A stretch of 30,306 bases of DNA. It comes from Macrostomum lignano. Taxonomy: Eukaryota. This document shows positions 3 to 30,306 of this stretch, piece after piece. Positions within the stretch are counted from its first letter, which is position 1; every line of letters starts with the position of its first letter. Both the position numbers and the translations under genes were made by a program. The stretch is taken from positions 1 to 30,306 of the forward strand of contig NIVC01003850.1 in the NCBI GenBank assembly GCA_002269645.1, read 5' to 3'. A model generated the notes under the pieces. It searched no databases. It saw only the letters and a list, made by a program, of their open reading frames with translations, and had not been told where the DNA came from.

Positions 3-327
3 ACTACTACTAATAGTAATAAGACTTCTACTACGGTTACTACAGCTACTGCTAAGAGTAGCAGTCATAATAATTCTACTATTATTGTGCCAGTCTATCA
101 GACTAAAACTATGACAGCTACAGTTGTTACTGCGGCTGCTATGACGACGGTTGCTAAGAAAGATGAACAGGAGGAGATTAAGCCAATTGAGCCAATTGAG
201 CCAATAGTAGACGAGATCGGCGACCATCAGAAGACTCCGATGGCGAGGATGAGCAGCAGTACGAAGTGACCTACGTTGATGCGAATGAATTCGAAATGGC
301 GACGACATTGCCCAGTGTAGTAAGGAG
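3..327 (+). CDS. Probable upstream exon of gene 1 (Thr-rich then acidic linker); both edges uncertain
   Basis: The frame from base 3 is open to ...DEIGDHQ. The -1 frame from 230 reads EDSDGEDEQQYEVTYVDANEFEMATTLPSVV. Candidate donors are GTAAGG at 320 (phase 0, fits the acceptor at 693) and at 328. Confidence 0.45.
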
Positions 328-426
328 GTAAGGAATGAGCGAGTTGCAGTGCTTGAGGTGTGGGTTTGCACTCCTTTAAATGATGCTCTTTTCAATAGTG
401 TAGTGCGGATGAATTTAAGAGTAGGG

Positions 427-547
427 CTGAAGGATATCTAAGAGTGAGACCTGAAGGATATCCAAGGGTGAGGCCTGAAGATATCTAACGGTGAGGCCTG
501 AAGGGTATCGAAGGGTGATTTCTGAGATCTAAGAGTGAGACCTGAAG
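427..547. repeat. Short degenerate ~24-bp tandem repeat (CTGAAGGATATCTAAGAGTGAGAC)
   Basis: CTGAAG recurs at 427, 451, 475, 498. Confidence 0.75.
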
Positions 548-692
548 CATTTCTATCTGTTTTCAAAAAACCGGCTAGATAAACTATCGATTTCTCGTCT
601 AGATAGCTGGATTAATGTAGAGGCTTCAATAAATAGATCTAGTGACTTCAATATCTAAATTAAACGATAATCCAATCCTAAAACTACTGCAG

Positions 693-866
693 GAGATGCT
701 GAAGCTCATTGGAGACCTGCGCCAAACTGTGCAGCAGCAAGAGGAGGAGATGGAGGAGCGGGAGATGCGCATTAGACGCGAGCTCATTGCCGAACGGGAC
801 CGGCTGATGAGCGAGGTGGAGGAGCGATTTGAGCAGCAGCTTCAGGAGCAGAAGGAGCTGCAAGAG
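693..866 (+). CDS. Gene 1 exon, KIF20-like stalk start (58 codons)
   Basis: ctgcag|GAG ATG ... CAA GAG|gtacgt, phase 0/0. Confidence 0.8.
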
Positions 867-6800: not shown

Positions 6801-9800
6801 CAGGGTGTCAGATGTTAAACAGGGTGTCAGATGGGAAACAGGGTGTCAGATGCGAAACAGTGTGTCAGATATCGGAACAGGGTGTCAGATATGGGATCAG
6901 GTGTCAGATATAGGATCATGGTGTCAGGTATTGGATCAGGTGTCAGATATAGGATCAGGTGTCAGATATGGTATCAGGTGTCAGATTTGGGATCATGGTG
7001 TCAGATATGGGATCAGGTGTCAGATGTGGGAACAGGCTGTCAGATATGGGATCAGGTGTCAGATATAGGATCAGGTGTCAGATGTGGGAACAGGGTGTCA
7101 GATGCAGATGCAATTTTGAACATTCATTTCAGCTAAATCAGCAGCTAGCCCAACTCCAGTCGCAATTGGCAGAAAAGTCACGTGACAGTGATAAGCTCTC
7201 TATCGAACTGAATGAGACGGTAAGCAAGCGTGTGGAGTTGGGGCTCTTCTCTTATTTTTTATCAACTTATTGTTTTTCATTGAAGGTTGAGAAGCTCCGC
7301 CAGTCTGAAGCGAAGTTGGAGTCCATTTCGGCGGAGTCCTCAGCAAAGGATGAGCAGCTGCTGGAGCTTCAGCGTCGGCTGGATGAAGCTGAGTCGGAAG
7401 CTGAGGATCAGCTTAAGCAGGTGAGTTTAAGATAATGAGCTTTAGGCAGGGTGTCAGATGGAAAACAGAGTGTCAGATAAAGGAACAGGGTGTCAGATAT
7501 AAGATCAGGTGTCAGATATGGGAACAGGGTGTCAGATAGGAGACAGGGTGTCAGATGTTAAACAGGGTGTCAGATGTTAAACAGGGTGTCAGATGGGAAA
7601 CAGGGTGTCAGATGGGAGACAGGGTGTCAGATGTTAAACAGGGTGTCAGATGTGGGATCAGGTGTCAGATATGGGAACAGGGTGTCAGATATGGGAACTG
7701 GTGTCAGATATAGGATCAGGTGTCAGATATGGTATCAGGTGTCAGATTTGGGATCATGGTGTCAGATATGGGATCAGGTGTCAGATGTGAGAACAGGCTG
7801 TCAGATATGGGATCAGGTGTCAGATGGGAAACAGGGTGTCAGATGGGAGACAGGGTGTCAGATGGAAAACAGGGTGTCAGATAAAGGAACAGGGTGTCAG
7901 ATAAAGGAACAGGGTGTCAGATGGGAAACAGGGTGTCAGATAAAGGAACAGGGTGTCAGATGGGAAACAGGGTGTCAGATGAGAAACAGGCTGTCAGATA
8001 TGGGATCAGGTGTCAGATGGGAAACAGGGTGTCAGATGGGAGACAGGGTGTCAGATGGAAAACAGGGTGTCAGATGGAAAACAGGGTGTCAGATAAAGGA
8101 ACAGGGTGTCAGATAAAGGAACAGGGTGTCAGATGGGAAACAGGGTGTCAGATAAAGGAACAGGGTGTCAGATGGGAAACAGGGTGTCAGATGAGAAACA
8201 GGCTGTCAGATATGGGATCAGGTGTCAGATGGGAAACAGGGTGTCAGATGGGAGACAGGGTGTCAGATGGAAAACAGGGTGTCAGATAAAGGAACAGGGT
8301 GTCAGATAAAAGAACAGGGTGTCAGATGGGAAACAGGGTGTCAGATGAGAAACAGGGTGTCAGATTTGGGATCAGGTGTCAGATATGGGAACAGGGTGTC
8401 AGATATGGGATCATGGTGTCAGATGGAAAACAGGGTGTCAGATAAAGGAACAGGGTGTCAGATGGGAAACAGGGTGTCAGATAAAGGAACAGGGTGTCAG
8501 ATAAAGGAACAGGGTGTCAGATGGGAAACAGGGTGTCAGATGAGAAACAGGCTGTCAGATATGGGATCAGGTGTCAGATGGGAAACAGGGTGTCAGATGG
8601 GAGACAGGGTGTCAGATGGAAAACAGGGTGTCAGATAAAGGAACAGGGTGTCAGATAAAAGAACAGGGTGTCAGATGGGAAACAGGGTGTCAGATGAGAA
8701 ACAGGGTGTCAGATGTGGGATCAGGTGTCAGATATGGGAACAGGGTGTCAGATGTGGGATCAGGTGTCAGATGTGGGATCAGGTGTCTGATATTGGATCA
8801 GGTGTCAGATATGGGAACAGGGTGTCAGATGTGGGATCATGGTGTCAGATGGGAAACAGGGTGTCAGATGTGGGATCATGGTGTCAGATGGGAAACAGGG
8901 TGTCAGATGTGGGATCATGGTGTCAGATGGGAAACAGGGTGTCAGATGTGGGATCATGGTGTCAGATGGGAAACAGGGTGTCAGATGTGGGATCATGGTG
9001 TCAGATGGGAAACAGGGTGTCAGATGGGAGACAGGGTGTCAGATGGGAAACAGGGTGTCAGATGTGGGATCATGGTGTCAGATGGGAAACAGGGTGTCAG
9101 ATGTGGGATCATGGTGTCAGATGAAAAACAGGGTGTCAGATGTGGGATCATGGTGTCAGATGGGAAACAGGGTGTCAGATGTGGGATCATGGGGTCAGAT
9201 GGGAAACAGGGTGTCAGATGTGGGATCATGGTGTCAGATGGGAAACAGGGTGTCAGATGTGGGATCATGGTGTCAGATGGGAAACAGGGTGTCAGATGTG
9301 GGATCATGGTGTCAGATGGGAAACAGGGTGTCAGATGTGGGATCATGGTGTCAGATGGGAAACAGGGTGTCAGATGTGGGATCATGGTGTCAGATGGGAA
9401 ACAGGGTGTCAGATGTGGGATCATGGTGTCAGATGGGAAACAGGGTGTCAGATGTGGGATCAGGTGTCAGATATGGGAACAGGGTGTCAGATGTGGGATC
9501 AGGTGTCAGATATGGGAACAGGGTGTCAGATATGGGATCATGGTGTCAGATGTGGGATCAGGTGTCTGATATTGGATCAGGTGTCAGATATGGGTACAGG
9601 GTGTCAGATATAGGATCTGGTGTCAGATATGAAAACAGGGTGTCAGATGGGAAACAGGGTGTCAGATGAGAAACAGGGTGTCAGATGTGGGATCAGGTGT
9701 CAGATATGGGAACAGGGTGTCAGATGTGGGATCATGGTGTCAGATGGGAAACAGGGTGAGACATATGAAATATTAAAAAATTAAAAAAACCTGAAAATTA

Positions 9801-11528
9801 CCAATGAGGATTTTCAACGATTCAGAAAAGTTTCCGAAATGTAAGTATCCTAAACAAACCTGAAAAATTGCTGAACTCTGAGGATTTTCGGGAAACCCGA
9901 AAAATTGCTGAAATCTTAGGATTTTCAAGAAACCCGAAAAATTGCTGAACTCTGAGGATTTTCAACAAACACAAAAAATTGCTGCAAATCTGAGGATTTT
10001 AACAAACCCGAAAAATTGCTGCAAATCTGAGGATTTTAACAAACCCGAAAAATTGCTGCAAATCTGAGAATTTTAACAAACCCGAAAAATTGCTGCAAAT
10101 CTGAGGATTTTAACAAACCCGAAAAATTGCCGAAATAGGTGGATTTTCAACAGACCCCAAAATTTGCCGAAATATAAGGATTTTCAACACACCCGAAAAA
10201 TTGCCAAAAAGGAGGATTTTCAAGAAACCTGAAAAATTACCAAATACGAAAACTTGATAAGCGAATAGAAGTGGTTAGCAAATTAGTGCTATTAAAGTAT
10301 TACAAATATATTATTAGCCTCAGTAAAATAATTGAGCCATTTTGAACATTCATTTCAGCTAAATCAGCAGCTAGCCCAACTCCAGTCGCAATTGGCAGAA
10401 AAGTCACGTGACAGTGATAAGCTCTCTATCGAACTGAATGAGACGGTAAGCAAGCGTGTGGGAGTTGGGACTCGTCTCTTATTTTTTATCAACCTATTGT
10501 TTTTCATTGAAGGTTGAGAAGCTCCGCCAGTCTGAAGCGAAGTTGGAGTCCATTTCGGCGGAGTCCTCAGCAAAGGATGAGCAGCTGCTGGAGCTTCGGC
10601 GTCGGCTGGATGAAGCTGAGTCTGAAGCTGAGAATCAGCTTAAGCAGGTGAGCTTAAGAAAATGAGCTTTAGACGGGGTGTCAGATGGGAGACAGGGTGT
10701 CAGATATGCAGACAGTGTGTCAGATGGGAGACAGGGTGTCAGATGGGAGACAGGGTGTCAGATAAAAAAAGGTGTCAGATATAGGATCTGGTGTCAGATA
10801 TGGGAACAGGGTGTCAGATGGGAAACAGGGTGTCAGATGTTAAACAGGGTGTCAGATATGGAAACAGGGTGTCAGATGGGAAACAGGGTGTCAGATGGGA
10901 AACAGGGTGTCAGATGCGAAACAGGGTGTCAGATGCGAAACAGTGTGTCAGATATCGGAACAGGGTGTCAGATATCGGAACAGGGTGTCAGATGGGAGAC
11001 AGGGTGTCAGATGTTAAACAGGGTGTCAGATGGGAGACAGGGTGTCAGATGTTAAACAAAGTGTCAGATGGGAAACAGGGTGTCTGATGAAAAACAGGGT
11101 GTCAGATGGGAAACAGGGTGTCAGATGGGAAACAGGGTGTCAGATGAAAAACAGGGTGTCAGATGGGAAACAGGGTGTCAGATGGGAAACGGTGTTAGAT
11201 GGGAAACGGGGTGTCAGATGGGAAACAGGGTGTCAGATGGGTAACAGGGTGTCAGATGGGAAACGGTGTTAGATGGGAAACAGGGTGTCAGATGGGAAAC
11301 AGGGTGTCAGATGGGAAACAGAGTGTCCGATATGGGAACAGGGTGTCACATATGGGAACAGGGTGTCCGATATGGGAACATGGTGTCAGATGGGAACAGG
11401 GTGTCCGATATGGGAACATGGTGTCACATATGGGAAACAGTGTGTCACATCTGGGAACATATGGTAACTTATCCCAAAAAAGTCTGATAATAGCTCGTAT
11501 TAACTAACTCGAGCGTCTTCGTCTTCTT

Positions 11529-11585
<57 letters not shown>

Positions 11586-14500
11586 ATCGGCCTTTTCTGT
11601 TTTAGTACATTTTTTTTAAATGACTGTATTTTTGTTTTGGCCTGTCCATCCTAGTTTCTTTTCTGTCTGACTTTCATTTAACTTGTCTTAGTAGGCTTGT
11701 ACATGCTTGTTCCGGAAAAATGATTTATGATTTCGTTTTCCGCTCGCTATCTTCTGTTTATAGAATTTATGTTTTTTTGTAATTTTTGCAGGTTCGCTCT
11801 TAGCAGAAATGAAATCCCATGTTTAATTTATACTTGTTAAACTTATTAAATTTATTCGCATATATTTCCACAATTCTAGCTCCGAGATGAGCTAGTTGCT
11901 GGGCAAGTCAAGCTCGATGCAAAGGAAACTGAGCTGAATGAACTGCGGCAGCAAATTGCAAACAAAGAAGCCGAAAATGCTGAGAAAATTCATTCGGTGA
12001 GTGCTCTGTAGTCCCACCCCTGTACCACACAGCTAGTCCCACCCCTGTACCACACAGCTAGTCCCACCCCTGTACCACACAGCTAGTCCCACCCCTGTAC
12101 CACACAGCTAGTCCCACCCCTGTACCACACAGCTAGTCCCACCCCTGTACCACACAGCTAGTCCCACCCCTGTATCACACAGCTAGTCCCACCCCTGTAC
12201 CACACAGCTAGTCCCACCCCTGTACCACACAGCTAGTCCCACCCCTGTATCACACAGCTAGTCCCAGCCCTGTACCACACAGCTAGTCCCAGCCCTGTAC
12301 CACACAGCTAGTCCCACCCCTGTACCACACAGCTAGTCCCACCCCTGTACCACACAGCTAGTCCCATCCCTGTACAAACAGCTAGTCCCACCCCTGTACC
12401 ACACAGCTAGTCCCACCCCTGTACCACACAGCTAGTCCCACCCCTGTACCACACAGCTAGTCCCATCCCTGTACCACAGCTAGTCTCACCTCTGTACAAA
12501 CAGCTAGTCCCACCCCTGTACAAACAGCTAGTCCCAACCCTGTACAAACAGCTAGTCCCACCCCTGTATCACACAGCTAGTCCCACCCCTGTACCACACA
12601 GCTAGTCCCACCCCTGTACCACACAGCTAGTCCCATCCCTGTACAAACAGCTAGTCCCACCTCTGTACCACACAGCTAGTCCCATCCCTGTACAAACAGC
12701 TAGTCCCATCCCTGTACAAACAGCTAGTCCCACCTCTGTACCACACAGCTAGTCCCATCCCTGTACAAACAGCTAGTCCCACCTCTGTACCACACAGCTA
12801 GTCTCACCTCTGTACAAACAGCTAGTCCCACCCCTGTACAAACAGCTAGTCCCAACCCTGTACAAACAGCTAGTCCCACCCCTGTACAAACAGCTAGTCC
12901 CATCCCTGTACAAACAGCTAGTCCCACCCCTGTACAAACGGCTAGTCCCAACCCTGTACAAACAGCTAGTCCCACCCTTGTACAAACAGCTAGTCCCATC
13001 CCTGTACAAACAGCCAGTAAGCATTTTTTTGTACTGTTTCTCCTAAGCTCTATAATAGTCCATGCTTTGATCTCAACAGCTGGAGCAACAACTGGAGCTT
13101 GAATCAGTTGCATCTATTGAAAAAGATCAGTTACTGATTGATTTAAAGCAGCGCCTCTCCGTGAACAATACGGACTCTGAAGAAAGGATAACGTTGGTAA
13201 ATAAAAAAATCACAACTAAATTTGTAGACTAGTTCGCATTTTGTCTACTGTAAGTAAAAACATACGAAAACTAAATTATTTTATTACAGCTCCAAGAGCA
13301 ACTATCAGCGGATACAGATACTATTCAAGCCAAACAAAATCAGATTAATGAGCTGAAAGAGCAGTTAGCTCAACGTTCGAAAGAAACTAGCCAGCTCATC
13401 CAGGCTGTGAGTCTTATTATGTACATTTCATAGCCTTGATTTGTGCCCTGAGGGTTGGCCATCAAGCTGGGCGTTAATTGCACGAGCAGAGCCAAGCCGA
13501 GATTCCGATTTTAAGCCCCAAAAATTAATGTGACTGCACTTGAAATCGAGCCTAAGCTGCTGGCACCGGGGTTTGTAGCCTAGTGATTAGAGCGTCGGAC
13601 TGACGACCTGAAGGTCGGGGGTTCGATTCCACTTGGAACAATTTGTGTCCTTGAGCAGCTTAACTCTGCATTGCTTCAGTTCACCCAGCTGTAAAATGGG
13701 TTGCCAGCATTCGCTGGAGGTAATTGAGGGTGTGTGTGGCGACCCCCCCCCCCTCAATCTTAGACGCAATAATTAAGACTCAACAACTCCAACTCACTCT
13801 TCATAGTCGGAGAACCGTGCAACCGCTGCCGAGGCAGAAGCTGAGGTTGCGAGACGCAACGTAGCGGACTTGCAGGGCCGTTTAGAAGTGCTCAAACGCG
13901 ACCTGGAGGATGAGAAGGACGCGTATAGGCGCAAATTAGAAGAGCGCCGGCTTGAAAGTCGGCGAAATCTTGAAGCGGCCGAGAATAACAGGCTGGCCGA
14001 ACGAGCCAAGGCCCAACGGGAGTTGGAGGCCGAGATGGCTAAGGTGGCCAGCCTTCATTTGGATAACGCTAAGCTCCAGGATAAAATCGAGCAGCTCCAG
14101 TTGCCGCCGCCGCCGCCGCCGCCGCGTTTGTCGTCAAGAGCTTCGACTTGCTCGACGACATCCGCCACTGTGAAAGCGGGTACTAAACGGCAGCGGGTTA
14201 GGGTGAGTTCCCTTTGGTTTTTTTTAATTTAAAAATTCAAAAATTTGAACTTTAGGGAGTTTTAGTTCTTTGTTTCTTCGAAAAGAGATTTATTAATCTG
14301 CGTTCCTTAGAAATGAGATTTATAGATCTGCGTTTCTTGGAAATGCGATTTATTGATCTGCATTTTTTAGAAATGAGATTTATTGATCTGCGTTTCTATC
14401 TGCGTTTCTTAGAAATGAGATTTATAGATTTGCGTTTCTTAGAAATGCGATTTATTGATCTGCATTTCTTAGAAATGAGATTTATAGATCTGCGTTTCTT

Positions 14501-16946
14501 AGAAATGAGATTTATAGATCTGCGTTTCCTAGAAATAAGATTTATTGATCTGCGTTTCTTAGAAATGAGATTTATTGATCTGCGTTTCTTAGAAATGAGA
14601 TTTATTGATCTGCGTTTCTTAGAAAAGAGATTTATTCATCTGCGTTTCTTAGAAATGAGATTTATCGATCTGCGTTTCTTAGAAATGCGATTTATTGATC
14701 TGCGTTTCTTAGAAATAAGTTTTTTATCTGCATTTCTTAGAAATTATATTTATTAATCTGCGTTTCTTAGAAATGCGATTTATCGATCTGCGTTTCTTAG
14801 AAATTAGATTATTAATCTGCGTTTCTTAGAAATGATATTTATTGATCTGCGTTTCTTAGAAATGAGATTCATTAATCTGCGTTCCTTAAAAATTAGATTT
14901 ATTAATCAGCGTTTCTTAGAAATGAGATTTATTGATCTGCGTTTCTTAGAAATGCGATTTATTGATCTGCATTTCGATTTATTGATCTGCGTTTCTTAGA
15001 AATGCGATTTATTGATCAGCGTTTCTTAGATATGAGTTATTAATCTCTGTTTTTGAAATGGAATTAATTGATTTTCATTCTTAGAAAATGAACTTAACGG
15101 ATCCGTGTTTCTTGGAAATTAGAATTTAATGACGTTTTTAGGAATGAACTTGTGGATCTGTATTCATTGGATTCATTCTGTATTCATTGGATGTGCTATT
15201 TATTTATCAGTATTTTCTTCAGTATTAAATATTTGTTAAGACCATGCTTGTGTTTCTTGTAAACAAATTGTATTTAATAAATACATTTGTGTCTAGAAAG
15301 ACAACAGCTTTAATATATTTATGACGGACAATCTGAAACTCTTTTTTTCAGCCTTCTCGATTAACAAGAGATATGATTTTCTCCTCTGAGGAGGACGACA
15401 GCACTGGGGAAATGGACTCGGTGTCGGAGATGTCAACCCCACAGATGTCGACCACGCCGACAACTGGGGATACGGCTGGTAGCTCCGCGCGGCTTTTGCG
15501 CAGCCAAACTGCCGCCAGGACTGCGTATGATGGGTTTGTGGTCTATTGGGTTGCTTTTAGTGTGTCTTTTAGATTCTTTACGTTGGGTTCAGATTCCTCA
15601 GTTTGGGGATTCAGATTCTTCAGGTAGGGTTCAGATTTCTCAGGTTGGGTTCAGATTTCTCAGGTGGGGTTCAGATTCCTCAGGTAGGGTTCAGCTTCCT
15701 CCGGTTGGGGTTCAGATTTCTCAGGTTGGGTTCAGATTCCTCAGATAGGGTTCAGATTCCTCAGATAGGGTTCAGATTTCTCAGTTTGGGGGTTCAGATT
15801 CCTCAGGTAGGGTTCAGATTCCTCAGATAGAGTTCAGATTCCTCAGGTAGAGTTCAGATTCCTCAGGTAGAGTTCAGATTCCTCAGGTAGAGTTCAGATT
15901 CCTCAGGTAGAGTTCAGATTCCTCAGGTAGAGTTTAGATTCCTCAGGTAGAGTTCAGATTCCTCAGGTAGGGTTCAGATTCCTCAGGTAGAGTTCAGATT
16001 CCTCAGGTAGGGTTCAGATTCCTCAGGTAGAGTTCAGATTCCTCAGGTAGGGTTCAGATTCCTCAGGTAGAGTTCAGATTCCTCAGGTAGAGTTCAGATT
16101 CCTCAGGTAGAGTTCAGATTCCTCAGGTAGAGTTCAGATTCCTCAGGTAGAGTTCAGATTCCTCAGGTAGAGTTCAGATTCCTCAGGTAGAGTTCAGATT
16201 CCTCAGGTAGAGTTCAGATTCCTCAGGTAGAGTTCAGATTTCTCAGGTAGAGTTCAGATTCCTCAGGTAGAGTTCAGATTCCTCAGGTAGAGTTTAGATT
16301 CCTCAGGTAGAGTTCAGATTCCTCAGGTAGGGTTCAGATTCCTCAGGTAGAGTTCAGATTCCTCAGGTAGGGTTCAGATTCCTCAGGTAGAGTTCAGATT
16401 CCTCAGGTAGGGTTCAGATTCCTCAGGTAGAGTTCAGATTCCTCAGGTAGGGTTCAGATTCCTCAGGTAGGGTTCAGATTCCTCAGGTAGGGTTCAGATT
16501 CCTCAGGTAGAGTTCAGATTCCTCAGGTAGAGTTCAGATTCCTCAGGTAGAGTTCAGATTCCTCAGGTAGGGTTCAGTTTCCTCAGGTAGGTTATCTATC
16601 TAACACCTCTCGCAGATCCTCTGTGCCCAGTTCTGCACTAACATCCCCGACGGAGCTGACGTCGGCGCCCCAGGCGTCGCAACAGCGGCAGTCGGAGGCC
16701 GCAGCTGCGCCTCAGGTCCCGGCCACAGTTCCTAAGAGGCCAGTCGCTCGGCTTCTTTACGACGAGAGTGCCTACAGGGACTCGTCGCTAATAGAACCTG
16801 TCGAGGGCGTGACGCCGCCGCCTCAGGTGCTGGTGTCCAGCACTTCCAGGCGGGGCACCGCCCGGCTGCCTTCTGGTGCTGCCGCTCTTCTCGCGAGCAG
16901 CAGGGGCGGACGCGGCGGCAGAGGCGGCAGGAAGAAAAAGAATTAA
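693..16946 (+). CDS. KIF20: Gene 1, spliced CDS, 5'-partial: kinesin-6 (KIF20A/B-like) coiled-coil stalk and tail, 1180 aa from 693 to the stop. Exons: 693-866, 1724-2317, 2685-2897, 3163-3279, 4329-4412, 4706-4792, 4860-4994, 5640-5726, 5794-5928, 6143-6229, 6297-6431, 7133-7219, 7286-7420, 10359-10445, 10513-10647, 11880-11996, 13080-13196, 13290-13406, 13807-14202, 15352-15524, 16616-16946
   Basis: All exons are AG/GT-flanked and join in frame without stops (3543 nt). EMLKLIGDLRQTVQQQEEEMEEREMRIRRELIAERDRLMSEVEERFEQQLQEQKELQEERHDTRL aligns ungapped with the KIF20A post-motor segment as I recall it (ELLQVVEAMK...LEMHLRDEICNEMVEQMQQREQWCSEHLDTQKELLEEMYEEKL). No motor domain lies in the window, so the family call comes from memory and needs BLAST. 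Confidence 0.65.
915..1629. repeat. Intronic minisatellite, 23-bp ATCTGCCATTTTGTAGTTTCAGA with a 20-bp variant in the 3' part
   Basis: Direct inspection. Confidence 0.95.
1724..2317 (+). CDS. Gene 1 exon, coiled coil (198 codons)
   Basis: cccttgcag|GAG ... GAG CAG|gtgagg; E/K/L/Q/R-rich heptads. Confidence 0.85.
2400..2625. repeat. Purine-rich low-complexity tract (GGAGAAGGGAGATA-like)
   Basis: Direct inspection; intronic. Confidence 0.8.
2685..2897 (+). CDS. Gene 1 exon (71 codons, AETISQLRSRIEALG...DLEERVEC)
   Basis: gcacccag|GCG ... GAA TGC|gtgagt; open frame missed by the ORF track. Confidence 0.8.
3163..3279 (+). CDS. Gene 1 exon, 39-codon module
   Basis: tttgccag|CTC ... CAG CAG|gtatga; LVQKLREEMADSKAKDAKLEEMNEQVLRISSQAEAQLQQ. 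Confidence 0.85.
3338..4262 (+). repeat. Intronic minisatellite, ~27-31-bp CCAGCCTCCCAGATCCTCAGTTGCTGGG(CCA)
   Basis: Direct inspection; reverse complement at 24052-24527. Confidence 0.95.
4329..4412 (+). CDS. Gene 1 exon (28 codons)
   Basis: tgcttcag|CTC ... GAT TTA|gtgagc; LNQQLLELKDQLESSQSGVDASSKSSDL. Confidence 0.8.
4497..4590. repeat. Short array of ~37-bp AAACCCGAAAAATTGCTGAAAT..GGATTTTC units
   Basis: Same family as 9780-10240. Confidence 0.7.
4706..4994 (+). CDS. Gene 1 duplicated exon pair, copy 1 (A 4706-4792, B 4860-4994)
   Basis: A = LNQQLAQLQSQLAEKSRDSDKLSIELNET, B = VEKLRQSEAKLESISAESSAKDEQLLELQRRLDEAESEAENQLKQ; 67-bp GT-AG intron. Confidence 0.85.
5640..5928 (+). CDS. Gene 1 duplicated exon pair, copy 2 (A 5640-5726, B 5794-5928)
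   Basis: Same peptide as copy 1; splice sites intact. Confidence 0.75.
6143..6431 (+). CDS. Gene 1 duplicated exon pair, copy 3 (A 6143-6229, B 6297-6431)
   Basis: Q>R change (CAG>CGG) in B; splice sites intact. Confidence 0.75.
7133..7420 (+). CDS. Gene 1 duplicated exon pair, copy 4 (A 7133-7219, B 7286-7420)
   Basis: N>D change in B; 66-bp internal intron; splice sites intact. Confidence 0.75.
9780..10240. repeat. ~37-bp minisatellite AAACCCGAAAAATTGCTGCAAATCTGAGGATTTTAAC
   Basis: Direct inspection. Confidence 0.9.
10359..10647 (+). CDS. Gene 1 duplicated exon pair, copy 5 (A 10359-10445, B 10513-10647)
   Basis: Shares the copy-3 variants; upstream flank shared with copy 1. Confidence 0.8.
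11529..11584. repeat. (TCTG)14 microsatellite
   Basis: Direct inspection. Confidence 0.95.
11880..11996 (+). CDS. Gene 1 exon, 39-codon module
   Basis: aattctag|CTC ... CAT TCG|gtgagt; LRDELVAGQVKLDAKETELNELRQQIANKEAENAEKIHS. Confidence 0.85.
12009..13016. repeat. 24-25-bp minisatellite GTCCCACCCCTGTACCACACAGCTA
   Basis: Direct inspection. Confidence 0.95.
13080..13196 (+). CDS. Gene 1 exon, 39-codon module
   Basis: ctcaacag|CTG ... ACG TTG|gtaaat; LEQQLELESVASIEKDQLLIDLKQRLSVNNTDSEERITL. Confidence 0.85.
13290..13406 (+). CDS. Gene 1 exon, 39-codon module
   Basis: tattacag|CTC ... CAG GCT|gtgagt; LQEQLSADTDTIQAKQNQINELKEQLAQRSKETSQLIQA. Confidence 0.85.
13442..13566 (+). repeat. Dispersed repeat fragment, copy 1
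   Basis: AATTGCACGAGCAGAGCCAAGCCGAGATTCC core matches the reverse complement of 28791-28910. Confidence 0.8.
13568..13753 (+). mobile_element. tRNA-derived SINE with CORE-like central domain, copy 1
   Basis: A box TAGCCTAGTGATTAG, B box GGTTCGATTCC, then TGTGTCCTTGAGCAGCTTAACTCT...CAGTTCACCCAGCTGTAAAATGGG, which resembles the MIR/CORE domain; second copy at 27857. Confidence 0.8.
13807..14202 (+). CDS. Gene 1 exon, end of coiled coil plus poly-Pro (132 codons)
   Basis: cttcatag|TCG ... GTT AGG|gtgagt. Confidence 0.85.
14285..15050. repeat. 30-bp minisatellite AGAAATGAGATTTATTGATCTGCGTTTCTT
   Basis: Direct inspection. Confidence 0.95.
15352..15524 (+). CDS. Gene 1 exon, acidic Ser/Thr-rich tail
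   Basis: ttttttcag|CCT ... ACT GC|gtatga (phase 2); a second in-frame donor GG|gtttgt at 15534 is possible. Confidence 0.75.
15585..16590. repeat. 20-bp minisatellite (A/G)GTTCAGATTCCTCAGGTAG
   Basis: Direct inspection. Confidence 0.95.
16616..16946 (+). CDS. Gene 1 last coding exon, ending RGGRGGRGGRKKKN*
   Basis: ctctcgcag|A TCC TCT GTG ... AAT TAA; phase 2 matches the upstream donor. Confidence 0.8.
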
Positions 16947-22907: not shown

Positions 22908-22986
22908 ATGGCTGCTGGACAAGTGCCGCTTCTAGCTGCTCTTGTTTGCCTTGCAGCTCTGAGTGCCCCTGCGTTGGCTCATAGTG
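22908..22986 (+). CDS. Gene 2 exon 1, signal peptide MAAGQVPLLAALVCLAALSAPALA|HS
   Basis: aagATGG start context, hydrophobic core, A-L-A cleavage motif, G|gtgagt phase 1. Confidence 0.85.
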
Positions 22987-25900
22987 GTGAGTTTCTTTAT
23001 TGTTGTTGGCGTTGAGCGGGATGCGTTACAGGTGGATGCAGGTATAGATACAGGCTTTTAAGGTATTTCTTGATGGATTGGACATTGAGGGGTAATTATA
23101 ATTGGTAGATTAGGGTTGACATTGAGGTAATTTTTATTGGTAGATTGTGGTAGACATTGTGGTTAAATTATAATTGGTAGATTAGGGTAGACATTGGGGT
23201 TAAATTATAACTGGTAGATTAGGGTAGACATTGGGAGGTAATTTTTATTGGTAGATCAGGGTAGACATTGGGAGGTAATTTTATTGGTAGATCAGGTAGA
23301 CATTGAGGGGTAATTTTCATTGGTAGATCAGGGTAGACATAGAGGGGTAATTAAAATTGGTAGATCATGGTAGACATTGAGGGGTAAAATTGGTAGATCA
23401 GGGTATAAATTGAGAGGTAATTAAAATTGGTAGATTGGGGTAGACATTGAGAGGTAATTTTAATTCGTAGATCAGGGTTGGCATTGAGAGGAAATTATAA
23501 TTGGCAGATCAAGGTAGACATTGAGAGGTAATTAAACTTCGTATATTATGGTAGACATTCAGAGATAAGTATGACTGGTAGTTAAAGGTACACATTGTTG
23601 AGAGGTAATAATTGGTAGATTAGGGTAGAAATTGAGGGTACTCATAACTGGTACATGTAGATTAGGGTAGACATTATGGGAGATGGAAGCAGGTGTAGAT
23701 ATGCTCAAATCAAAGCCATTTGTTTTCCTTTAACTCAATAGACTGTTACGCCAGCGTCGGCGGCGCCAGAGGCCATATTTATCAGTTCGATGGCGGCAGG
23801 GTGACTGCTGACCCCGCCCTCGGAGGCTGCCTTAAACGGGATCTGCTGTTGACGAGATCCGTTGCCGACAAGGATGCTTCATCGCTGTGCGAGCTGGAGA
23901 TTCTGGCCAGCTTCAAAGCTGTCAGCGGTCCGAGCAGCGGCCTGTCCCGGTTGAGTGCCGTCACCGTTAAAGTCGATGGGAAGGTCTATCGACTGCTGGC
24001 TGGGCGGAAACTCACCGTGAGTTTGGCTGGTGTTTGATTATTGTTTGGTTTGGATCTGGGAGGCTGGCCCAGCAACTGAGGATCTGGGAGGCTGGCCCAG
24101 CAACTGAGGATCTGGGAGGCTGGCCCAGCAATTGAGGATCTGGGAGGCTGGCTTAGCAACTGAGGATCTGGGAGGCTGGCCCAGCAACTGAGGATCTGGG
24201 AGGCTGGCCCAGCACTGAGGATCTGGGAGGCTGGCTTAGCAACTGAGGATCTGGGAGGCTGGCCCAGCAACTGAGGATCTGGGAGGCTGGCCCAGCACTG
24301 AGGATCTGGGAGGCTGGCTTAGCAACTGAGGATCTGGGAGGCTGGCCCAGCAACTGAGGAGGCTGGCCCAGCACTGAGGATCTGGGAGGCTAGCTTAGCA
24401 ACTGAGGATCTGGGAGGCTAGCTTAGCAACTGAGGATCTGGAAGGCTGACCCAGCACCTGAGGATCTGGGAGGCTGGCTTAGCAACTGAGGATTTGGGTG
24501 GCTGGCCCAGCAACTGAGCATCTGGGAATTCTAAAAGCTTCCTGAACTCTAGACATGTTATGCTAGATATTCACACCCATCAGAGCCAACCCTCAAGGCG
24601 TAGAGAGTGTACATTCCTGACGATCAGAAACCGTGTACACCCCGTGGGAGCATGTGTAAGACTCTGGTTGCCCAAGGCCAAACCGATATTTCGCACAACC
24701 ATCGCAGGTGAACGGCCAGCTGAAGTCGGTGCCCCACGGGCCGGACAAAGGTGTGAGGATTTTCTTCTCCGGCGAAGACCTGGTGCTGGCGCACAAGCGC
24801 TGCAACTTCTGGGTCGGCTTCGACGGAGACTGGACCGCCACCTACTGGCTGAGCGGCAAGTACCGCGGCAAGCTGGAGGGTCTGGCCGGCGACTGCGACG
24901 GACACGGCAAGGACGAAGTCGGCAGCTGGCTGTCCGAGGCTGGCTGCCGTCCGGTCAAGCGGAAGCTCGATGCCTGAGCTCGGCCGCCAAGCGGGAGGCT
25001 GTGCACCGGTGCAGTCGGGTGATTAACGGCAAGGACGGCTGCTTGAATCGAGAAGTACTGCGGCCGTGCATCGCAGACGCCTGCTCGGCTAAGGGGCTCT
25101 CAGAAAGAAGATTCTGTGCGCCAGCTTCTACCTGCAATCGAGACGCTGCGCCAGGCACCACAAGCCGCTGTCTTGGAGGCATCGAAGCGGATGTCGTAAG
25201 CTGTGTTTATAACTAATAAGTTGATGCGCAATTCACCTACTATGAGTAGCATCAATTAGCAATACTTTTATTCTTGTTTAAAAAGGAAAAGTGTAGGAGC
25301 GGCTTTTTACAGGTGAAATCAGAGATAAGGTGGATATGGTTGGCGGCCCTCTCTCCTCACAGGTGAAATCAGAGATAAGGTGGGTGGTTGGCGGCCCTCT
25401 CTCCTCACAGGTGAAATCAGAGATAAGGTGGGTGGTTGGCGGCCCTCTCCTCACAGGTGAAATCAGAGATAAGGTGGAGATGGTTGGCGGCCCTCATCTC
25501 AGGTGAAATCAGAGATAAGGTGGGTGAGTGGCGGCCCTCTCTCCTCACAGGTGAAATCAGAGATAAGGTGGAGATGGTTGGCGGCCCTCATCTCAGGTGA
25601 AATCAGAGATAAGGTGGGGGTGGGTGGCGGCCCTCTCTCCTCACAGGTGAAATCAGAGATAAGGTGGGGGTGGGTGGCGGCCCTCATCGCAGGTGAAATC
25701 AGAGATAAGGTGCCGTGGCCTCTGATTAAATTATAGATCAAACGCATGGCTAATCGACCTAAAATATTCAACCAAATCAGCCTCCTCAACAACAACCTTC
25801 AGCAATAAAGTGCGGCCCGAACGAGCACTTCACCAGCAGGGCCAGCCCATGTCCTGCCACATGCGGCAGTCATTTCTTCGGCACACCTAAGAAATGCTTT

Positions 25901-28900
25901 CACCTGCCCAGCGCCGAAGGCTGTCGCTGCAAGCGAGGCTTCGTCCTGGACAGCAGCAACCGCTGCGTGCCGCCCAAGGAGTGCGAGTGCCTGAACAAAC
26001 TGTGCTTGGACAGAATGCCTCGGAAAAAGTGTCTGAAGTGGCGAGCTCGCGGCCGGTGCAAGAGGTATCCGGAGGTGATGGCGCGATTCTGCCGGCTGAC
26101 CTGCGGCCACTGCGAGACAAGATGCGGGGAGAATCAGTTTAGCGACAAATTGTGCAAAAATATTTTGCGGCAAGGGAAATGCAGCAAGCCGCTGTACAAG
26201 GCTGTCTGCGCGGCCACTTGCGGCCGCAATAAGTGTCGTGAGTTGCTTTTTTACGGCTCGTTCGTTTTGAAATTTTCTAATGATTTCTGGATTACGTTTA
26301 GGTGTAGAACGTGTCAGTTGGCGCCAAAATAAAGTAAGATAGCTCAAATTAAAAGTTAGTTGACGCCAAAAAGAGCGTTAAGATGGCGCCAAAATGGAGA
26401 TTCAGTTAGCGCCAAAATAGAGTATCAGTTTGGGCGCCAAAATAGAGTGTCAGTTTAGGCGCCAAAATAGAGTGTCAGTTTAGGCGCCAAAATAGAGGGT
26501 CAGTCTGGGCGCCAAAATAGAATGTCAGTTTAGGCGCCAAAATAGAGGGTCAGTCTGGGCGCCAAAATAGAATGTCAGTTTAGGCGCCAAAATAGAATGT
26601 CATTTTGGGCGCCAAAATAGAATGTCAGTTTAGGCGCCAAAATAGAGGGTCAGTTTAGGCGCCAAAATAGAGGGTCAGTCTGGGCGCCAAAATAGAATGT
26701 CAGTTTAGGCGCCAAAATAGAGGGTCAGTCTGGGCGCCAAAATAGAATGCCAGATAACGGAGTCAGTTAGCGCCAAAATAGAGAAGCTATCAACAATTGT
26801 TTTCTTCAATTTGTTCAAATCTTTAACATTTGAGTTGAAGCTTAAAGCCGCTCGCTAACTTTCTATTCAGGCTGCCCAAACAAGCGCCGGATCGAGTCCA
26901 AGTGCTCCACGCGGTACAAAAATCGAATAATAAAATCGATTCGTTATCTGCCCGGTCCGCACGGCAAGTGCATCAAGAGCACTGTAGTCCGCTACGAACC
27001 GTGCGGGGGTGAGTTCGTGTTCTATGGACACCTTTTTTACATAGAAAAAAAACTGAGGATTGCTGATCGGCTTTGTGAATGGCTGGTGAATGGGCTTTCC
27101 AGGGGCTTTAGCACCAAGGGGCTTTAGCACCAAGGGGCTTTAGCACCAAGGGGCTTTAGCACCAGGGGCTTTAGCACCAAGGGGCTTTAGCACCAAGGGG
27201 CTTTAGCACCAAGGGGCTTTAGCACCAAGGGCTTTAGCACCAAGGGGCTTTAGCACCAAGGGCTTTAGCACCAAGGGCTTTAGCACCAAGGGCTTTAGCA
27301 CCAAGGGGCTTTAGCACCAAGGGGCTTTAGCACCAAGGGGCTTTAGCACCAAGGGGCTTTAGCACCAAAGGGCGCCAGCACCAACGGGCGCCAGCACCAA
27401 GGGGCGCCAGCACCAAGGGCGCCAGCACCAAGGGGCGCCAGCACCAAAGGGCGCCAGCACCAAGGTGATAAGTTACGTTTTAAGTAGCTGCAATCAACCC
27501 ATTCATTTGCAGCCTGTCCCAGCATAGCCAAGACCAAGCTGCAGCCGTGCAATTACTGCAAAGGCGTGCGAACAGGCAAGCGCACTATGCAATACGAGAG
27601 ACCCACGGTAAGCACCGCTGCCTGCGTCGAGTCACTCGAGTCAGCAAGAAGTGTCCCTGCCCTCCCTCTGGCCAGCTGAAGGTTGTCAGCAGCAGCAAAT
27701 GCGTGAAACACACCGAACTGGTCCGCGTCACCAAGGTGTTCAAAGCCGCCGAGAAGTGCACCAAGTGCAAGCGAATAACCCGACGACAAGTTGTAAAGAA
27801 AATTAGTGAGCTTATAATTATAACAATTTTGTTTTTTTAAGCATTAGATTAAGGCAGGGGTTGTAGCCTAGTTGTCAGAGCGTCAGACTCGCGACTTGAA
27901 GGTCGGGGGTTCGATTCCCGATCGCACTGGAACAGTTTGTGTCCTTGAGCAACTTAACTCTGCATTGCTTCAGTTCACCCAGCTGTAAAATGGGTGCCAG
28001 CATTAGCTGGGTAATTGAGGGTGTGCGGTGACCCCGCCGTTAGCAACCTGCAGATGTGCCGCGCATTAGCTGCGGCTGAGCTGTCGGTTGCATATGCGGC
28101 CCAATTAGCGAGGTTACAGAGATTGTCTCTCTCAGAGAGTCACTCTCACCATGTGTAATTTACCTTTTAATCTATCTACGCTTCTACCTTTTTAATCACA
28201 GAATGCTCGGGCAGACGAACCGTTCTCAAGAAGTGCACGTCGGGACGCAAGCATCGCAAGAAGCTGGTGTACACTAAGCAAGCGAGAAACTGCAAATGCA
28301 TCTGGAAGCTGGCCAAGGAGCAGAACCTGCTCTGCTACTGCAGCAAGAAGCGCAGCGTGAAGCGTAGTTGCTCGAACGGCTATCGATTAAGAAAATAACT
28401 GGGTTGCGGCTCAAGAACAACAAATGCGTTCGTTGGGTGCGCCAAGTGAAACGGAAGATTAACTGCCCCAAGAGACGCCAAGCAAAGCTGATTTGCCAAC
28501 GAAAGACGTGCAAAGCGACCAAGATTTCCAGCTATTACCAGCTCAGTGGATGCAAGTGCAGTAAAAAGTTGTTAAGCGGCTGGTTGGAAAATGCTGTGAG
28601 TTTGGCAAAGATATTTCTATTCTGTCTTGCTTTGTCGACTCGACCTGTTTTTTTGCCAGACGTATGCCAAATTTAGCTCTAACATTATACTTTCTACTCA
28701 TCAGTAGACGAACTCTGACACAAAGTCTTCACTAAATAGAAAATGCGAAACGAAACGAAGTCGAAGCTAGTCTGTATCCTTGGAAATCCTGTGCACCAGC
28801 CGCCCAGGCTCGATTCCATGTGCAGTCGCATTAATTTGGGGCTAAATTGGAATCTCGGCTTGGCTCTGCTCGTGCAATTGAGGGCTTTGAGGGCCCACTC

Positions 28901-30306
28901 CCAAGGCACAGTGAAGTGTACATGCCTAACGATAAATAAAGTTATGGCCCCTGCGCATGACGGCGTACGTATCCGCGCGCTTGTGTGTGCCTGCTCAGGG
29001 GAGTCGGCAGAATTGGCAGTAATGCCTTTCACCGGTTGTGCAACAATGTCGCTCAAAGTTCTCCAGGCCTCCTGCCTCTTAAAATCTTTAATTTTCAGTT
29101 TTTAGTAGTCGTTTTTGAAAACTGCTTGAATTTTTCTTAGAAACAAAGAATTTTTCTTAGAAACATTGATTTTTTTTCTTAAAAACAACGAATTTTTCTT
29201 AGAAACATTGATTTTTTTCTTAGAAACAATGAATTTTTCTTAGAAACACTGATTTTTTCTTAAAAACAAAAAATTTTTTCACATTTTTAAAAGGTTGTCC
29301 GAAGGGCTACAAGAAAATTGTGCGAGTCGATCGCTACTGGAAGAAGCTGATCAAGGTGCAATACCTGCTTGAAGATCACAAGTGTCGCAAGAAGACAACC
29401 ACCAGAAAGTACCGGGTTGCTTGTCCACCAGCTAAAAAGGAGGCTCGATGCGACAAGGTCACCGGTGCCAAGGTGTTCAAGAAAATCTGGTACGTCCTCA
29501 AAATGGCGACTGCGTCAAGAGGCGGTCGAAACGAGTGGCGAGACTGCGTGAGTTTCGATTTGCGCTTTTTGCTAGATTTTTGACACTTTAAATCGCATTC
29601 CTATCTATAAAGCTGGTGCCAGACAGTGTAAAATACTCATTTAGTAAATATTTTAAATATTTTTGGATGGTTTCATAGATAATGATCCTGTCTAACAGGT
29701 GATGATCCTGTCTAACAGGTGATGACCCTGTCTAACAGGTGATGATCCTGTCTAACAGGTGATGATTTGTCTAACAGGTGATGATCCTGTCTAACAGGTG
29801 ATGATCCTCTCTAACAGGTGATGACCCTGTCTAACAGGTGATGATCCTGTCTAACAAGTGATGATCCTGTCTAACAGGTGATGATCCTGTCTAACAGATG
29901 ATGACCCTGTCTAACAGGTGATGATCCTGTCTAACAGGTGATGACCCTGTCTAAGAGGCTATGATCCTGTCTAACAGATGATGACCCTGTCTAACAGTCT
30001 ATGATCCTTCTAACAGGTGATGAACTTGTCTAACAGGTAATCACCATGTCTAACAGGCTATGATCATGTCTGATTGTCTGTATATCCCTGTCTGGAGCAA
30101 GTTATGTATTTTGTCTGTTTGTCTGTGCAATTTACAAGCTTTTCTGCAGACTAAACTGAATTAGAGTTCGAACTCACGCAGACTGCCTGCACGGTGTCTA
30201 CCGACACGTCGGGCCCTGCCATCGCTCTGGCGGCAAAGGCGTCTCACGCTATCGCAAAGTCCGCTACGAATATTATCGCCGAAAGAAGGGCAGCTGCAGC
30301 TGCGAG
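22908..30306 (+). CDS. Gene 2, spliced CDS, 3'-partial: secreted VWD-C8-TIL-ShK-ShK-(Cys/Lys/Arg repeat)n mucin-like protein. Exons: 22908-22986, 23742-24016, 24708-25195, 25803-26237, 26871-27008, 27513-27805, 28202-28595, 29294-29547, 30182->30306. Needs six 1-base insertions to be open (829 codons so far).
   Basis: Signal peptide, recognisable VWD/C8/TIL/ShK cysteine patterns and canonical splice sites. Intron phases only agree once the six -1 shifts are repaired. Confidence 0.8.
23085..23690. repeat. Degenerate ~38-bp minisatellite TGGTAGATTAGGGTAGACATTGAGAGGTAATTATAAT
   Basis: Direct inspection; gene 2 intron 1. Confidence 0.85.
23742..24016 (+). CDS. Gene 2 exon 2, VWD N-terminal half
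   Basis: ctcaatag|AC TGT TAC; CYASVGGARGHIYQFDG resembles the VWD motif CxxxGDPHYxTFDG; ACC|gtgagt. Confidence 0.85.
24052..24527 (-). repeat. Minisatellite GGATCTGGGAGGCTGGCCCAGCAACTGA, reverse complement of the 3338-4262 family
   Basis: Direct inspection. Confidence 0.95.
24708..25195 (+). CDS. Gene 2 exon 3, VWD C-terminal half plus C8 domain (two -1 shifts, ~24968 and ~25120)
   Basis: FWVGFDGDWTATYWLSGKYRGKLEGLAGDCDG (VWD); CLSSAAKREAVHRCSRVINGKDGCLNREVLRPCIADAC and then SWRHRSGCP (C8) lie in successive frames. Confidence 0.75.
25309..25711. repeat. 46-50-bp minisatellite CAGGTGAAATCAGAGATAAGGTGG...GGCGGCCCTCTCTCCTCA
   Basis: Nine CAGGTGAAATC occurrences. Confidence 0.95.
25803..26237 (+). 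CDS. Gene 2 exon 4, TIL domain (25811-25984) plus two ShK-like domains (26003-26113, 26123-26236)
   Basis: CGPNEHF...CPATC...GCRCKRGFVLDSSNRCVPPKEC; CLDRMPRKKCLKWRARGRCKRYPEVMARFCRLTCGHC; phase 1/1. Confidence 0.9.
26330..26780. repeat. 25-bp minisatellite GCGCCAAAATAGAGTGTCAGTTTAG
   Basis: Direct inspection; degenerate edges. Confidence 0.9.
26871..27008 (+). CDS. Gene 2 exon 5, one basic Cys repeat
   Basis: tattcag|GC TGC CCA ... TGC GGG G|gtgagt; 138 nt, phase 1/1. Confidence 0.85.
27102..27465. repeat. 15-16-bp minisatellite GGGGCTTTAGCACCAA switching to GGGCGCCAGCACCAA
   Basis: Direct inspection. Confidence 0.95.
27513..27805 (+). CDS. Gene 2 exon 6, two basic Cys repeats (-1 shift ~27599)
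   Basis: tttgcag|CC TGT CCC ... ATT A|gtgagc; 293 nt +1 = 98 codons. Confidence 0.8.
27857..28036 (+). mobile_element. tRNA-derived CORE-like SINE, copy 2 (3' tail may extend to ~28190)
   Basis: Aligns along its length with 13568-13753. Confidence 0.8.
28202..28595 (+). CDS. Gene 2 exon 7, three basic Cys repeats (-1 shifts ~28386 and ~28569)
   Basis: aatcacag|AA TGC ... TGC T|gtgagt; 394 nt +2 = 132 codons. Confidence 0.8.
28791..28910 (-). repeat. Dispersed repeat fragment, copy 2 (element may span ~28690-29090)
   Basis: Reverse complement matches 13442-13566. Confidence 0.75.
29125..29280. repeat. AT-rich ~21-22-bp tandem repeat TTTTTCTTAGAAACA(AAGAA/TTGAT)
   Basis: Direct inspection. 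Confidence 0.8.
29294..29547 (+). CDS. Gene 2 exon 8, two basic Cys repeats (-1 shift ~29502)
   Basis: tttaaaag|GT TGT CCG ... CTG C|gtgagt; 254 nt +1 = 85 codons. Confidence 0.8.
29682..30065. repeat. 20-bp minisatellite GATGATCCTGTCTAACAGGT
   Basis: Direct inspection. Confidence 0.95.
30182..30306 (+). CDS. Gene 2 exon 9, truncated by the window end
   Basis: ctcacgcag|AC TGC; CLHGVYRHVGPCHRSGGKGVSRYRKVRYEYYRRKKGSCSCE. Confidence 0.8.

Follow-up and report, generated by a model that had tools for sequence, protein, structure and literature searches.

In secreted proteins such as VWF, MUC2, MUC5B, MUC5AC and FCGBP, a D assembly (VWD-C8-TIL) stands N-terminal to a long repetitive region. In the flatworm Macrostomum lignano, the adhesive protein Mlig-ap1 combines a VWD-C8-TIL block with very basic Lys/Arg (K/R) regions and a high cysteine content, and further contains a C-type lectin domain, 17 EGF modules and low-complexity K/R regions (for example, SRKPRRKNRKSRKP) on both domain flanks (PMC6410801). 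These regions act cohesively by charge, and attachment is blocked by heparin (PMC6410801). Mlig-ap2 features VWD and TIL together with LDLa, TSP1 and repeats of 221/255 residues, and Theama ap1 and ap3 either resemble Mlig-ap1/ap2 or are of a GRKHS low-complexity type. Here we analyze a gene that begins in the 3′ part of a 30,306-nucleotide stretch of the M. lignano genome (positions 1 to 30,306, forward strand, of contig NIVC01003850.1, assembly GCA_002269645.1; hereafter the window). The window contains the 5′ part of an M. lignano gene whose secreted, modular product has a VWD-C8-TIL head followed by two ShKT domains and a long tail of basic, cysteine-containing units of ~43 residues. Comparison with deposited proteins places the gene in an undescribed, flatworm-wide family.

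Neither the ShKT domain nor the ~43-residue unit is present in Mlig-ap1, Mlig-ap2 or Theama ap1/ap3. ShKT domains do serve as structural six-cysteine units in secreted, non-toxin proteins, among them Toxocara Tc-MUC-1 to 4 and the limpet mucus protein P-vulgata_14, where they are joined to Ser/Thr mucin tracts or protease domains (PMC7333891). No protein of this type has been reported with a VWD-C8-TIL head or the ~43-residue repeat.

Architecture of the window gene

The gene lies on the plus strand and runs in nine exons from 22908 to the end of the window (30306), where its reading frame is open (Table 1). The visible part comprises the first ~830 codons and, once six 1-nt frame breaks are repaired (see below), yields a product of 829 amino acids. 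All introns are of the GT-AG type, every splice site is intact, and all exons from exon 4 on are of phase 1-1, the usual layout for shuffled extracellular modules. The coding blocks are short and G+C-rich, and the introns between them (0.4–1.3 kb) are filled with minisatellites; exon 4b was located via the M. lignano models P0005 and P0006, which contain it. An earlier note, made from the letters of this DNA alone, had listed a signal peptide, VWD, C8, TIL, two ShK domains and basic repeats; all of these elements were found on the plus strand at the positions in Table 1.

Close database matches consist solely of M. lignano models, in the form of fragmentary UniProt entries. Model P0003 shows 100% identity with the window across the stretches that match in frame. 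UniProt models for this gene group are garbled by frame errors or fused to the neighboring gene. When the complete repaired protein was used in a word-indexed homologue search, Lys-rich words saturated the candidate list, so that a fused mis-model was the only match. Residues 6–828 of the repaired product align colinearly with residues 17–842 of the M. lignano protein PAA59660.1 (46% identity over 844 columns, E = 0), and neither the junctions nor the repair sites carry a gap in this alignment. Of the 73 cysteines, 72 are shared between these two proteins, including all 37 of the tail.

The protein opens with a putative signal peptide (MAAGQVPLLAALVCLAALSAPALA, followed by HS), recognized by inspection from its hydrophobic core and A-x-A cleavage site (ALA/HS), and judged by this peptide it is secreted; in the paralog P0007, a signal peptide likewise lies immediately ahead of VWD. 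On the repaired protein, Pfam detects VWD (PF00094, E = 1.6e-7, 32.2 bits against a cut-off of 22.9) and TIL (PF01826, E = 1.9e-9; 3.3e-10 on exon 4), and gives no match to C8 at E ≤ 10. In a search of PDB sequences, residues 208–321 align to the C-terminal half of C8 plus TIL of FCGBP (5e-53 overall) and also match MUC5B, MUC2 and VWF (E = 1e-5 to 3e-2). The C8 region is also colinear with that of the metagenomic relative P0018, for which a Pfam C8 match is precomputed. The N-terminal half of C8 is shortened in the window protein, and the C8/TIL junction (...SGC-P-IKCGPNEHF) spans the splice between exons 3 and 4, so that TIL directly follows C8. VWD, the C-terminal half of C8 and TIL align to solved structures, which bears out the comparison with VWF and mucins drawn in the earlier note. 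Within the head, GARGH occupies the position of the GDPH motif, GLAGDCDG occupies that of GLCGNxNG, and CGLC is absent; the relatives P0018 and P0011 retain GDPH and GDPY, respectively. These alignments identify the head as a genuine but trimmed, single-copy D assembly with a probable C8.

The tail in the window consists of nine units of 41–50 residues (~43) with the pattern C-P-x7-9-C-x~19-C-x~10, one of them encoded by exon 4b, in agreement with the 'at least 9' basic repeats counted earlier. It contains 18% Lys, 13% Arg, 9% Cys and 3.5% Asp plus Glu; the net charge amounts to +27.8 per 100 residues, and the isoelectric point is 10.55. Ser, Thr and Pro together account for 15% (6.2%, 5.2% and 3.5%), the tail has no Ser/Thr/Pro-rich mucin-like stretch, and there is no N-x-S/T sequon across the 829 residues. 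Compared with VWF, the gel-forming mucins and FCGBP, the window protein has a single assembly and lacks GDPH, CGLC, a glycosylated Ser/Thr/Pro-rich domain and N-x-S/T sequons. The paralogs PAA60779.1 and PAA91016.1 have no VWC or cystine-knot C terminus by Pfam and continue in units to the last residue. A gel-forming mucin was rejected as a candidate on these grounds. An identity with Mlig-ap1 or Mlig-ap2 was rejected as well: Pfam shows no C-type lectin, EGF, TSP1 or LDLa domain in the 829 visible residues.

The tail units exceed chance. A hidden Markov model (HMM) of the unit built without the window scores the tail at 70.8 bits, against a maximum of -36 among 200 shuffles; an HMM built from trematode and monogenean units only still gives 30.8 bits, against a maximum of -2.6 (200 shuffles). 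Pfam reports no family for the tail at E ≤ 10, and a 45-unit profile matched no PDB sequence at E ≤ 10. For structure prediction by AlphaFold2, we used a 126-residue paralog segment that aligns to window units 7–9, with repeat-shifted family segments as the alignment. The resulting model is all-β, with a mean predicted local distance difference test (pLDDT) score of 90.7: units one and two each form three antiparallel strands, and the third forms two long strands and a short one. With a shallow alignment, the mean pLDDT was 47 and the prediction is informative for window unit 1 only, which forms a three-stranded sheet at pLDDT 75–83. Each unit is thus predicted to be a three-stranded β-sheet, and the tail is predicted to be a string of folded, disulfide-braced β modules rather than a low-complexity region. 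A Foldseek search of the three-unit model against the PDB returned only spurious β-barrel matches (best E = 0.74). TSP1 and VWC were considered as the fold of the unit, and no support for either was found.

The earlier note had pointed out that ap1 is K/R-rich. The tail is not of the low-complexity type of the ap1 K/R regions: it is an ordered array of predicted folded β modules, and their order is preserved out to the trematodes (see below). Compared with Mlig-ap1, the window gene encodes two ShKT domains and Cys-braced predicted β modules, and it encodes neither lectin nor EGF domains.

A flatworm-wide protein family

To collect relatives, 1.84 billion representative proteins were searched exhaustively by HMMER with a profile of TIL, both ShKT domains and units. 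In M. lignano, PAA59660.1 (BOX15_Mlig029998g6) and PAA60779.1 (BOX15_Mlig010738g1) have the same domain order as the window gene, with 19–24 detectable units and more than 1,500 residues (1,500–1,700 or more); they represent a separate paralog at 46% identity, with a similar tail charge (+26 to +27 per 100 residues). The tails of the paralogs continue for 700–850 or more residues. PAA75931.1 and PAA91016.1, also from M. lignano, begin with an N-terminal VWA domain, units and a Cys-rich stretch, and then proceed through VWD-C8-TIL-ShKT-ShKT-units. In total, M. lignano has at least three diverged paralog groups, two of which are hyper-basic. Monogenean members are found in Cichlidogyrus (KAL3314390, with VWD at 2e-32 plus ShK, and KAL3320252) and, as a fragment, in Protopolystoma. 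Trematode members come from Calicophoron (CAL8088134), Dicrocoelium (CAH8436902) and Paragonimus (KAA3678697); in these, units and a dibasic site take the place of VWD-C8 and are followed by TIL-ShKT-ShKT-units. The VWA paralogs, the two Cichlidogyrus proteins and the trematode members have in common a TIL-ShKT-ShKT core and, after it, the same Cys units in a conserved order. Further relatives are unlabelled metagenome, Logan and MetaClust entries.

The window protein is colinear with the trematode members over TIL, both ShKT domains and up to ~10 units (E = 3e-31 to 4e-46), which marks the individual unit positions as old and distinct. It is likewise colinear with a monogenean member (7e-39), a VWA paralog (9e-86) and a metagenomic VWD-C8-TIL-ShK relative (2e-41). 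Tail charge per 100 residues varies between groups: it reaches +26 to +28 in the paralog group of the window gene, against +14 to +15 for the VWA paralogs and +4 to +9 for the parasite proteins. Given the mild charge in trematodes and monogeneans, extreme charge is a Macrostomum-side feature and does not define the family.

The named members are labelled 'hypothetical', 'unnamed' or 'ShKT domain-containing' in databases. We found no paper that names the paralog gene identifiers or accessions or describes the trematode relatives, and nothing on ShK in M. lignano; the paralog identifiers were not found in the supplements of M. lignano expression papers. By its domain order and colinearity, the gene belongs to an undescribed, flatworm-wide family. 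The earlier note had not recognized the combination of domains and named, as a finding that would count against its reading, an already described family member of the same architecture. Paralogs with this domain order, and more distant relatives, are in fact already in GenBank, which narrows the first statement and touches the second only weakly: they have been deposited and not described.

Two observations concern individual relatives. In the trematode proteins P0009, P0010 and P0012, TIL is immediately preceded by a dibasic, furin-like site (RRSRRS, RRSARS or RSRRS) at the place occupied by VWD-C8 in Macrostomum, an arrangement suggestive of either proteolytic processing or incomplete gene models. 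The intron-free, 3-kb environmental contig L001 (JGI metagenome 3300060324, Ga0591109_0176197) carries, at 154-3028, a relative that encodes one unit, VWD (with GDPH), C8, TIL, two ShKT domains and units up to a stop, followed by a second frame with further Lys-rich units. It is probably the transcript of an unsampled flatworm.

Both ShKT domains of the window protein are detected by Pfam on exon 4 alone (PF01549, E = 2.9e-8, two stretches); both follow the six-cysteine pattern and terminate in C-x2-TC-x2-5-C. ShKT is the fold of sea-anemone potassium-channel toxins, and the protein, secreted and rich in disulfides, carries a strong positive charge. It could accordingly be read as a defensive effector, with the Cys-rich polycationic tail as an antimicrobial or surface coat and/or the ShKT pair as a blocker of potassium channels in predators or prey. 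At what we take to be the position of the toxin Lys-Tyr dyad (before Cys4), however, ShKT-1 has Glu-Val, so that the dyad is absent; ShKT-2 reads L-Y-K and presumably departs from the ShK toxin in its Cys3–Cys4 spacing (8 residues, not 10). Known antimicrobial peptides do not resemble a chain of at least 1,500 residues whose modules are ordered and conserved in position, and the parasite relatives are merely mildly basic. ShKT/SXC modules are, moreover, common in non-toxic mucins and proteases (PMC7333891). Taken together, we consider a defensive role very unlikely.

Integrity of the locus

The exon lengths call for six 1-nt additions across ~2.5 kb of coding sequence, and at each of the six sites the two reading frames overlap by one base (Table 1). 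All six breaks are 1-nt deletions and none is an insertion; four fall in A or G runs and two beside a C. The repaired frame contains no in-frame stop. Other M. lignano models continue in frame across sites 1–3: P0004 has KRKLRCLSS and P0001 has GALRKKILC across sites 1/2, and P0003 and P0006 have QYRETHGK across site 3. Because all breaks are deletions, no stop interrupts the frame, the splice sites are intact, models read through three sites and the alignment to the paralog is gap-free, the breaks are most likely long-read assembly errors, the gene being intact in the animal.

The same breaks could instead be genuine frameshifts in a decaying duplicate that no longer yields protein. M. lignano is a recent polyploid rich in redundant copies, six breaks fall within ~2.5 kb of coding sequence, and neither an annotated GenBank protein nor a transcript-derived protein was found for the exact locus. 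In addition, the locus of a paralog in GCA_002269645.1 is free of frame breaks in the parts that match its own protein at ≥95% identity; for this reason, assembly error at the window locus is something that we infer and do not prove. A pseudogene is difficult to reconcile with breaks that are exclusively 1-nt deletions in A/G runs or beside a C, free of insertions and in-frame stops, with splice sites that are all intact, and with 72 of 73 cysteines kept at 46% identity. Model P0003, which is identical to the window in frame, crosses site 3, and homeologue models cross sites 1 and 2; the garbling of UniProt models by frame errors is what an error-prone assembly would give. We therefore regard decay as unlikely and the gene as most likely intact.

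Proposed function

We propose that the intact gene encodes a rod-like, disulfide-braced polycation that self-associates via its D assembly and, by binding polyanions, builds or cross-links a secreted matrix, a reading that rests partly on analogy and that we hold with somewhat less than even confidence. After folding in the secretory pathway, the tail would form a long, stiff, disulfide-stabilized rod or beads on a string, with a surface charge of about +28 net per 100 residues. By analogy with VWF, MUC2 and FCGBP, the single N-terminal D assembly may mediate self-association. The polycationic rod would bind polyanions, such as sulfated or sialylated glycans, the glycocalyx or other acidic secretory products, and an extracellular matrix would thereby be built, condensed or cross-linked after secretion. 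The charge-based cohesion of Mlig-ap1 offers a precedent in the same animal.

Several results weigh against this proposal. The D assembly has neither CGLC nor GDPH, and the relatives in trematodes and monogeneans have a far lower net charge (+4 to +9 per 100 residues). A homologue search with the tail alone gave no matches. The missing annotated or transcript-derived protein for the exact locus and the unbroken frame of the paralog locus, both described above, bear on the premise that the gene is intact.

The site of action can also be read differently. To our knowledge, trematodes and monogeneans have neither duo-gland adhesive organs nor rhabdites. The earlier note had listed the protein as a candidate component of glue, mucus, rhabdites or a defensive secretion; because the family is conserved in parasites without duo-gland organs and rhabdites, its distribution argues that the ancestral role was not specifically duo-gland adhesion, rhabdite, glue, mucus or defense. 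The conservation of both the family and its unit order in these groups would also fit a protein of an internal matrix or lumen (protonephridial tubules, reproductive tract, eggshell apparatus or basal matrix), which would act by the same mechanism at another site and with other partners. A possible family member, the Schistosoma mansoni 'ShKT-domain protein' Smp_335600, marks protonephridia (PMC11349301). Set against this, the at least three diverged M. lignano paralog groups, two of them hyper-basic, fit a lineage-specific co-option to a secretion, and we consider an internal protein somewhat unlikely. The hyper-basic Macrostomum paralogs could be the product of such a co-option.

Beyond the secreted polycationic matrix protein proposed above, a wider interpretation is possible, though doubtful. 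The ~43-residue 'CP' unit may be an undescribed class of extracellular domain, a Cys-braced β module of three strands without relatives in Pfam or the PDB, and the TIL-ShKT-ShKT-unit proteins may be an unrecognized matrix component of all flatworms. In Macrostomum, the family may have expanded into hyper-cationic rods that form a second, ap1-independent, charge-based system for cohesion or packaging in the secretion of a gland, be it adhesive, rhabdite, mucus or cement.

Introns and neighboring sequence

Of the gene's eight introns, seven hold a minisatellite array, different in each case (Table 1), and the 28-bp unit of intron 2 reappears in inverted orientation upstream. In place of a minisatellite, the intron between exons 5 and 6 holds an element with a tRNA-like head (GGGGTTGTAGCCTAGTTG...GGTTCGATTCCC) and ~200 nt of further sequence, which looks like a tRNA-derived short interspersed nuclear element (SINE); ARAGORN and Rfam made no call in the window, this element included.

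Upstream, on the same strand, lies a gene for a coiled-coil protein. Its fusion to the VWD gene of the window in UniProt (model P0001; A0A1I8JNR8, 'TRAF-type domain-containing') is an annotation artefact. An exon-like block of the coiled-coil gene (VEKLRQSEAKLESISAESSAKD...) occurs five times within strongly G-skewed satellite arrays, and could reflect segmental tandem duplication or an assembly artefact. Planarian equinox was followed up as a VWD lead and rejected, as it is a TSP1/EGF protein.

Table 1. Exons, frame breaks and repeat elements of the gene, with neighboring features, in window coordinates
Feature	Position	Strand	Description
Exon 1	22908..22986	+	Start ATG at 22908 and signal peptide; 26 codons + 1 nt, phase 1; donor G/gtgagt
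Exon 2	23742..24016	+	VWD N-terminal half; GARGH where the GDPH autocleavage motif is expected
Exon 3	24708..25195	+	VWD C-terminal half (24708-24917), C8 (24971-25194); two 1-nt gaps
Exon 4	25803..26237	+	Intact, 435 nt, phase 1-1; TIL 25811-25984, ShKT-1 26003-26113, ShKT-2 26123-26236
Exon 4b	26871..27008	+	Basic Cys unit 1; intact, 138 nt, phase 1-1
Exon 5	27513..27805	+	Units 2-3; one 1-nt gap
Exon 6	28202..28595	+	Units 4-6; two 1-nt gaps
Exon 7	29294..29547	+	Units 7-8; one 1-nt gap
Exon 8 (start only)	30182..30306	+	Unit 9; frame open at window end
Frame break 1	24968/24969	+	Beside a C (exon 3)
Frame break 2	25093-25096	+	G4 run (exon 3)
Frame break 3	27595	+	Beside a C (exon 5); TAC/GAG; relatives read QY-RETHGK
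Frame break 4	28392-28395	+	A4 run (exon 6)
Frame break 5	28564-28568	+	A5 run (exon 6)
Frame break 6	29499-29502	+	A4 run (exon 7)
Minisatellite	23081-23653		Period 37/111 bp
Minisatellite	24052-24527		Period 28/83 bp
Minisatellite	25309-25712		Period 46/96 bp
Minisatellite	26385-26753		Period 25 bp
Minisatellite	27099-27465		Period 16/63 bp
Minisatellite	29127-29278		Period 20/41 bp
Minisatellite	29682-30071		Period 20 bp
Inverted 28-bp unit	~3387-4200		Unit of intron 2
SINE-like element	27857-28130		tRNA-like head, then ~200 nt
Coiled-coil gene	642-16946	+	Exons, for example, 13858-14196 and 16646-16891
Exon-like block, five copies	4860-4967, 5794-5901, 6297-6404, 7286-7393, 10513-10620		Block of the coiled-coil gene
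G-skewed satellite arrays	~5-12 kb		Contain the five blocks

Discussion

Secreted scaffold proteins with D assemblies are known; what is new here is a further paralog of an undescribed family and a repeat module without a described relative. The molecular make-up of flatworm secretions (glue, mucus, rhabdites, eggshell cement, and tegumental or tubule coats) is only partly known, and the charge-based model of cohesion in M. lignano assigns the cohesive role to one protein, Mlig-ap1. The window gene marks a large and conserved family that combines a VWD-C8-TIL head of the polymerizing type with a new polycationic repeat that is predicted to be folded. Because the public models of the locus are garbled or fused to the neighboring gene, the corrected exon model is required for probe design, RNA interference and proteomic work. 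If the protein is a matrix or cohesive component, it would extend the set of building blocks available for bio-inspired wet adhesives, and the family would offer a conserved secreted protein, so far found in flatworms only, for study in flukes and monogeneans.

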